Source: Diadema antillarum (Eukaryota). Taken from it: DNA of 64,000 bases. This document shows positions 39,944 to 40,171 of this stretch, in pieces. The stretch is from contig NW_027271621.1 of the NCBI RefSeq assembly GCF_040938485.1, positions 434,001 through 498,000 on the forward strand, read 5' to 3'. Each line of letters opens with the position of its first letter. Within the stretch, counting starts at the first letter, position 1. The position numbers and the translations under genes were made by a program. The notes beneath the pieces are model-generated. The model was not told where the DNA came from and ran no database searches. It worked only from the letters and a program-made list of their open reading frames with translations.

Positions 39944-40171
39944 CCCCGTCTCCTCCGTGTTAACTCCAGTGCTTTCCAGCTGTGCCTGATGTATGTTGTT
40001 GCCAAGCGACATGTCGATGTCCTCTCGGTTGGTGTTGGCACCTGTTTCGTCACCCGACCTGGTCGTCGCAGTTTCTCTCTTCGTCGTCTTCTCCGGCGAA
40101 GGATTCGAAGACGGTTCCGATACAGCAAGTTTCTGCCTCCGACTCCTTGACCGACTCGCTCCAATACCCAT
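39944..40171 (-). CDS. G6PD: Candidate first coding exon of a long G6PD isoform (76 aa, MGIGAS... N-terminus)
   Basis: ATG at 40171 in good Kozak context (attATGG) with an in-frame upstream TAA at 40216-40214. 228 bp open, GC-richer than flanks, ending GGG|gtacgt in phase 0, which matches the phase-0 acceptor at 17996. The assignment to G6PD is inferred from strand and phase only. Confidence 0.6.

Follow-up and report, generated by a model that had tools for sequence, protein, structure and literature searches.

G6PD is usually regarded as a soluble cytosolic enzyme, and we know of no molecular handle so far for the reports of 'bound', stimulus-released G6PD. An earlier note on the G6PD locus of the sea urchin Diadema antillarum had pointed to an isolated open reading frame far upstream of the gene, which leads us to ask whether Diadema encodes a second, longer form of the enzyme and whether the extension would place that form at a membrane. 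The window analysed here, by which we mean the whole stretch of 64,000 nucleotides, corresponds to C733:434001-498000 of a 1.75-Gb assembly, and positions given below are those of the window unless a contig is named. The H6PD gene of the assembly agrees at 100% identity with the NCBI protein of Diadema antillarum, which confirms the species.

A candidate distal first exon at the G6PD locus

Echinoderm G6PD clusters were retrieved by a profile that combined an H6PD scaffold with six cleanly aligned Diadema G6PD exon pieces, and the clusters of Diadema, S. purpuratus, Lytechinus and starfish were recovered in this way. In Diadema the G6PD exons span C733:425768 to window position 17996 and are read from the minus strand. 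The common exon 2 (ESGLSMLKESMSQDDEVPHIFVVLGAS, 17916-17996) is followed by exon 3 (GDLAKKKIYPTLW, 38 nt, 3837-3874), exon 4 (opening WLYKDGLLPKKTTFVGYARS..., 1961-2069) and exon 5 (273-491, ends approximate), with the remaining exons at C733:425768-432978, outside the window. NCBI lists four G6PD isoforms of 496-515 aa on this contig, none of them with a 76-residue extension, and the same isoform set for D. setosum. Isoform X1 (515 aa) starts MTDSGRVMELVNLW and runs on into ESGLS, X2 (514 aa) is like X1 with a C-terminus one residue shorter, X3 (507 aa) places MTDSGR before the same ESGLS, and X4 (496 aa) starts MLKESM within exon 2. The annotated alternative first coding exon of X1 and X2 occupies 31066-31107 on the minus strand, with its start at 31107, and X3 uses an inner donor of this exon, GTAATG, after MTDSGR. 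A 67-nt 5′ exon at 20835-20901 (minus strand) is taken from the 5′-partial NCBI model of the other haplotype (P0245). Counting the candidate described below, we find at least four alternative 5′ exons here, namely MGIGAS, MTDSGR with its two donors, the non-coding 67-nt exon and the internal start of exon 2; a fifth type, MNAHIVKSDMARLTNKEL, is seen in the G6PD gene of S. purpuratus.

The candidate first coding exon, of 76 codons, lies at 39944-40171 and is supported by its orthology and its intact frame. Read on the minus strand, 40171-39944 gives 228 nt without a single stop, opening MGIGASRSRSRRQK. The earlier note had described an isolated, GC-rich minus-strand reading frame with a good start context and an in-frame stop upstream, and all of these features are present. 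The segment is 55% GC vs 38% for the window, the start context is gcattATGg, with A at -3 and G at +4, and the nearest in-frame stop 5′ of the ATG is a TAA at 40216-40214, 15 codons away. An ATG immediately before that TAA forms a start-stop (40219-40214, minus strand). The exon ends GGG/GTACGT, with the phase-0 donor at 39938-39943 (minus strand), and the frame, when continued beyond the donor, runs into a stop within the intron. At 17996 a strong acceptor reads ttttccag before GAGAGTGG, and exon 2 is closed by gtaagt, also in phase 0. The note's further proposal, that the donor joins the G6PD exon at 17996 in frame, is confirmed from the donor, the acceptor and the frame, since the 39944 to 17996 join is in phase 0.

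We propose that the 228-bp segment would serve G6PD as an alternative first coding exon, the most distal of the set, with a promoter of its own ~4.6 kb from a divergent neighbour gene. A phase-0 splice would carry the transcript across a 21.9-kb intron to exon 2, bypassing the first exons at 31.1 kb and 20.9 kb, and would give a long product of ~577 aa (76 + 5 + 496 residues). The MTDSGR exon (31107-31066) falls within this proposed intron. The 67-nt exon, if placed after the 76-codon exon, brings an immediate TGA and so would have to be skipped in the long isoform. Directly upstream, a conserved block at 40172-40564 (minus strand) is taken as the 5′ leader or promoter on account of its conservation, the start-stop and a TATAAA at 40249-40244. 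This TATAAA would put the start site at ~40219, in which case at most one AUG would precede that of MGIGAS in the message. Several ATGs, including those at 40274, 40244 and 40219, lie within 130 nt 5′ of the exon start, so that translation would hinge on where transcription begins. CpG and GC islands did not single out the 76-codon exon.

Open reading frames of at least 70 aa number 68 in 50 kb, so that a frame of 76 codons is of ordinary size, and its significance has to come from conservation and orthology and not from the frame itself. A Pfam scan of the 76 aa gave no match, a word search gave no candidate among proteins of 42-133 aa, and a two-row alignment of the H6PD ORF and the 76 aa returned only H6PD proteins among its best 120. 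Only ~14 residues are conserved and the rest is unalignable, which explains why neither a word search nor HMMER picks up relatives from the 76 aa. The single match obtained by HMMER among 1.84 billion representatives, a bacterial PepSY lipoprotein, was judged spurious. It has to be asked whether the frame belongs to G6PD at all, as it might open a different transcript, or have arisen by chance in a promoter shared with the neighbour. The window has many frames of similar length, the 76 aa match no protein family and the neighbour starts only ~4.6 kb away, all of which would be compatible with such an origin. However, the interval from 39944 to 17996 showed no further coding exons, a LINE fragment aside, and three other echinoderm annotations connect an orthologous exon to G6PD. 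We consider an origin outside G6PD very improbable.

The G6PD locus is bounded upstream by the neighbour itself, an RCC1/WD40-RLD gene that is alsin-like in S. purpuratus and has its first conserved coding exon at 44789-45004 on the plus strand. The exons of this gene that align to S. purpuratus lie at 44789-45004, 47500-47575, 48985-49179, 49738-49929 and 59003-59176. In S. purpuratus (L024:1-5971) NCBI splits the neighbour into genes of 169 aa and 1503 aa, but going by the tblastx matches the two may belong together, with the 169 aa coming from the 5′ end of one gene.

Orthologous exons and conservation within Diadema

The G6PD isoform X1 of S. purpuratus (XP_030829356.1, P0253), a RefSeq prediction of 571 aa, starts MGIGASTKRRKK. 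Its N-terminus reads MGIGASTKRRKKCAES, and after 70 residues the protein continues into ESGLSLLRDSM, which is the same exon 2. At the S. purpuratus locus (L024) the MGIGAS exon of 70 codons (10001-10210; donor ATG/GTGAGT, phase 0) is followed by an MTDEGR exon (13678), the counterpart of the Diadema exon at 31066-31107, by an MNAHIV exon (18675) and by exon 2 (22775), to which the MGIGAS exon is joined in isoform X1. The order of neighbour, MGIGAS exon, MTD(S/E)GR exon and exon 2 is identical in the two urchins, and the divergent neighbour is syntenic. In both, the most distal first coding exon encodes MGIGAS and a basic cluster; the exons differ in length (70 vs 76 codons) and in the intron that follows (12.6 kb vs 21.9 kb in Diadema), and the distal exon is annotated in S. 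purpuratus whereas it is unannotated in Diadema. BLASTP of the two extensions gave 14/25 identities (E = 3e-4), confined to the N-terminus, and past residue ~25 the extensions are unalignable. Judged from sequence and exon order, the predicted 76-codon exon of Diadema and exon 1 of S. purpuratus isoform X1 are positional orthologues.

A similar arrangement is predicted in starfish. Isoform X1 of Asterias rubens and A. amurensis (XP_033647134.1 and XP_071809943.1; 571 aa, RefSeq predictions) begins with a 67-codon distal exon in phase 0 that lies 13 kb 5′ of exon 2; a short proximal first exon stands between the two. The distal exon reads MPPMGNSASANKRKK, and its motif stretch ..MGNSASANKRKK.. 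contains MGNSAS and NKRKK. It resembles the Diadema exon in being a distal phase-0 first exon with such a motif, and differs in its start, which is annotated three codons upstream of MG (MPPMG), and in an exon-2 acceptor two codons earlier. The contexts are weak at both Asterias ATGs. With the MPPMG start the glycine becomes N-terminal only if Met4 is used, and the choice of start site therefore decides whether it is exposed. In A. rubens three close ATGs precede MGNSAS at L025:9990-10012, one out of frame, one for MPP and one for MG.

In isoform X1 of S. purpuratus and of the two Asterias species a first exon at the corresponding place runs into the same exon 2, which makes it very likely that the predicted 76-codon exon is a real alternative first coding exon of G6PD. 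What is new here is the Diadema exon, which is unannotated; the long isoform is already predicted by RefSeq in S. purpuratus and Asterias. The conservation of Gly2 and Ser6 in relatives had been set beforehand as a test of the exon, and both residues were found to be kept: MG-x-x-A-S and the basic cluster persist through synonymous codon changes. Between the two urchins the MGIGAS codons show three synonymous differences (ATT/ATA, GGA/GGT, GCG/GCA) and zero replacements, and in Asterias the Gly, Ala and Ser of the motif are kept with different codons.

Within Diadema we compared three versions of the exon, from the window, from the other-haplotype contig C1033 and from contigs of three sequencing runs (X1-X3). 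A second collinear copy of the locus is formed by the end of contig C1099 and the start of C1033, with the exon copy at C1033:9329-9712, and looks like the other haplotype. Together C1099:1442688-1481075 and C1033:1-9712 cover window 1-40564, and the copy is split inside the long G6PD intron, which explains why the NCBI model there is 5′ partial (P0245). Identity between the haplotypes ranges from 79% to 97% along the intron, and this regional variation was too large for haplotype identity to be kept as a marker of exons. The search of sequencing runs with the exon returned three matching runs, and no RNA run was among them. Their contigs amount to 830-930 Mb, divided among 6-8.5 million records with similar depth across unrelated bins, and each run has one contig over 39934-40564 that extends at least 10 nt past the donor into the intron; that of X1 carries 179 letters beyond 39934. 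We read these runs as genomic DNA of a related urchin, and they accordingly supply conservation data and no splice information.

The ATG, the frame and the donor are kept in all three versions. Gap letters in the block 39934-40564 number 22 in run X2 and 19 in run X3, all of them 5′ of the ATG and none in the reading frame. The ten indel events of X2 all fall in the 393 nt 5′ of the ATG and leave the 228-nt ORF untouched, an outcome with a probability of (393/631)^10 = 0.009 if indels are assumed to be spread evenly over the conserved block. Similarity between the haplotypes and to the related genome collapses ~10 nt beyond the donor, where the intron is barely alignable, and the conserved block is the only long one in a 4-kb stretch to reach at least 88% in runs X1-X3. 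Codon changes within Diadema amount to 7-8 replacement vs 2-3 silent in the exon, a count that leaves out up to six substitutions of the related genome. In mid-exon the frequency of replacements is close to the neutral expectation, and the first 14 residues are nearly invariant. Constraint within Diadema, as far as sequence comparison can suggest, is visible only as preservation of the frame and at the N-terminus, the pattern that one would expect of a targeting signal with a disordered spacer behind it.

These data also bear on whether the exon is an unused relic in Diadema, with its frame not yet decayed and the ancestral long isoform surviving in S. purpuratus and Asterias. The long isoform is absent from the NCBI sets of D. 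antillarum, D. setosum and two Lytechinus species, the runs matching the exon included no RNA run, and the ratio of replacement to silent changes within Diadema is near neutral, as a relic would have it. Against this, three independent copies keep the ATG, frame and donor, with 0 indels vs 10 events in the adjoining 393 nt, the first 14 residues are nearly invariant, and the upstream block is the best conserved part of the 4-kb stretch. A relic appears unlikely to us, and orthology together with constraint suggests that the exon is probably used in Diadema.

Repeated sequences were also encountered along the locus. A LINE reverse-transcriptase fragment lies in the intron at 35702-36638 (minus strand) and recurs in the other haplotype at 95%. 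A short G/C-rich element at 38736-38890 reaches a word depth of 10^5 in each of the three runs, shows numerous rearranged joints, and represents either rRNA-like sequence or a repeat of very high copy number. Within intron 2 of G6PD, a 2.1-kb segment (7282-9388) is 95% identical, in inverted orientation, to C1033:17090-19160 upstream of the exon, and is probably a mobile element that sits at different places in the two haplotypes.

The N-terminal motif and the proposed membrane anchor

Within its first 14 residues the long isoform would present Gly2, small residues at positions 3-5, Ser6 and then a polybasic cluster of net charge +4 to +5. The earlier note had recognised the MGxxxS consensus of N-myristoyltransferase (NMT) in this start, and rightly so: the Diadema N-terminus fits the NMT pattern, for which we used PROSITE PS00008 after the initiator Met, G-{EDRKHPFYW}-x(2)-[STAGCN]-{P}, and the basic cluster comes directly after it. 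The sequences of Diadema and S. purpuratus match PS00008, as does that of Asterias when read from Met4, and residues 7-16 carry a net charge of +5, +4 and +4 respectively. Myristate plus basic residues is the membrane-binding signal of the Src type, and in MARCKS and Src the two act as a myristoyl-electrostatic switch. The Diadema exon resembles these proteins in its Gly2 and Ser6 and in the stretch of basic residues between positions 7 and 16. The other ~60 residues of the extension are acidic (net -6), of low complexity and poorly conserved, and would form a probably disordered spacer between the anchor and the catalytic body.

From these features we infer that the long isoform would be targeted to the membrane. 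Provided that it is expressed, its N-myristoylation seems reasonably probable from the motif. Some G6PD, and hence NADPH production, would then be held at the inner face of the membrane, the short isoforms from the proximal first exons would stay soluble, and the choice of promoter and first exon would decide between them. In the literature searched we found no report of a myristoylated G6PD. We regard the reading as a whole, in which a distal first exon gives a membrane-held, N-myristoylated G6PD isoform, as evenly balanced between right and wrong.

The suggestion that localisation is switched by phosphorylation of serine was not borne out. Ser10 of Diadema is Gly in the related Diadema genome, and Ser is absent from the basic cluster of S. 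purpuratus and Asterias; the cluster has Thr7 as its only phosphorylatable residue in S. purpuratus and none in Asterias. The likeness to Src and MARCKS therefore does not extend to a MARCKS-type phospho-switch, as the serines that this requires are unconserved in the G6PD extension.

The chief alternative is that the basic cluster serves another purpose. The exon may be a genuine long-isoform exon whose cluster acts mainly as a classical nuclear-import signal, giving a nuclear G6PD. RRQK in Diadema, KRRKK in S. purpuratus and KRKK in Asterias fit K-K/R-x-K/R, as a pattern match only, and the annotated Asterias start MPPMG would preclude myristoylation. There is also a precedent in the long TALDO1 isoform, which is imported via its 10 N-terminal residues (PMC5050407). 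TALDO1 is comparable as a pentose-phosphate enzyme that changes its location through a short, basic extension at the N-terminus; it is unlike the Diadema case in that its extension arises by an alternative translation start, not an alternative exon, and is without the Gly2 motif. An import signal, however, needs no Gly2, Ala5 or Ser6, and these are kept from urchins to starfish despite synonymous and multi-base codon changes. The cluster moreover lies directly behind an NMT-type motif, as in Src-type anchors. Nuclear import and recognition by NMT are not mutually exclusive, and the conservation of Gly2, Ala5 and Ser6 argues for NMT. We think it rather unlikely that the cluster is mainly an import signal.

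Another sorting signal, such as a mitochondrial presequence rich in Arg and Ser and free of acidic residues, could also be considered, as residues 1-18 of Diadema contain no acidic residues and many Arg and Ser. Such a presequence is hard to reconcile with the few hydrophobic residues, with an amphipathic helix that is not evident, and with S. purpuratus and Asterias, in which Lys takes the place of Arg and acidic residues appear by position 15-25. It has very little probability in our estimate.

The membrane anchor that we favour for the long isoform can be compared with known systems. CYB5R3 has a myristoylated membrane form and a soluble form by way of alternative first exons, and the proposed G6PD exons would work in the same manner, with first-exon choice alone giving a soluble redox enzyme a myristoylated membrane form. 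The two differ in what follows the myristoylated glycine, which is a hydrophobic anchor in CYB5R3 and would be a polybasic cluster with a long acidic spacer in the predicted long form of Diadema G6PD. The human G6PD long isoform 'a' begins MGRRGS and comes from an alternative 5′ exon. It is like the Diadema form in its Met-Gly start, Ser6 and basic residues, and unlike it in that Arg at position 3 breaks the NMT pattern. The long G6PD forms of frogs and fish start MGSRPS, MGSRAS or MGQKMS, which fit the NMT pattern, MGSRPS and MGSRAS being without a basic cluster. In the predicted long isoforms of Bufo, Engystomops, Alosa and Pempheris (P0198, P0203, P0225 and P0236) an N-terminus of ~10 residues stands ahead of the canonical start. 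Among 136 G6PD N-termini, 11 start with MG and four match the NMT pattern. We judge eleven Met-Gly starts in 136 to be about the proteome background, and an enrichment of Met-Gly among G6PD N-termini was rejected on this ground.

Egg G6PD and NADPH at the membrane

The earlier note had connected the exon with the particle-bound G6PD of sea-urchin eggs. Swezey & Epel found that this enzyme stays bound after non-ionic detergent, and that it is released by small solutes with neither the enzyme nor its site permanently modified (PMC2114359). Detergent would release a myristoyl anchor, so that the classic egg binding, being detergent-resistant, solute-released and free of permanent modification, is not explained by the exon, and we do not retain this connection.

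A consumer of NADPH is nevertheless present at the egg surface, where the plasma-membrane oxidase Udx1 uses NADPH in the fertilisation burst (PMC6411640). One could imagine, and we hold this to be doubtful, that a lipid-anchored G6PD is old in deuterostomes and makes membrane NADPH for NOX/DUOX-type oxidases such as Udx1. On the same doubtful reading echinoderms would carry the full motif (MGIGAS and MGNSAS), fish and frogs MGSR[PA]S, and mammals the degenerate MGRRGS.

The long isoform predicted for S. purpuratus and Asterias is missing from the NCBI gene models of D. antillarum and D. setosum alike. For an enzyme known by its soluble form, a conserved first exon that combines an N-myristoylation motif with a basic cluster would offer a testable route by which NADPH production may be placed on membranes.
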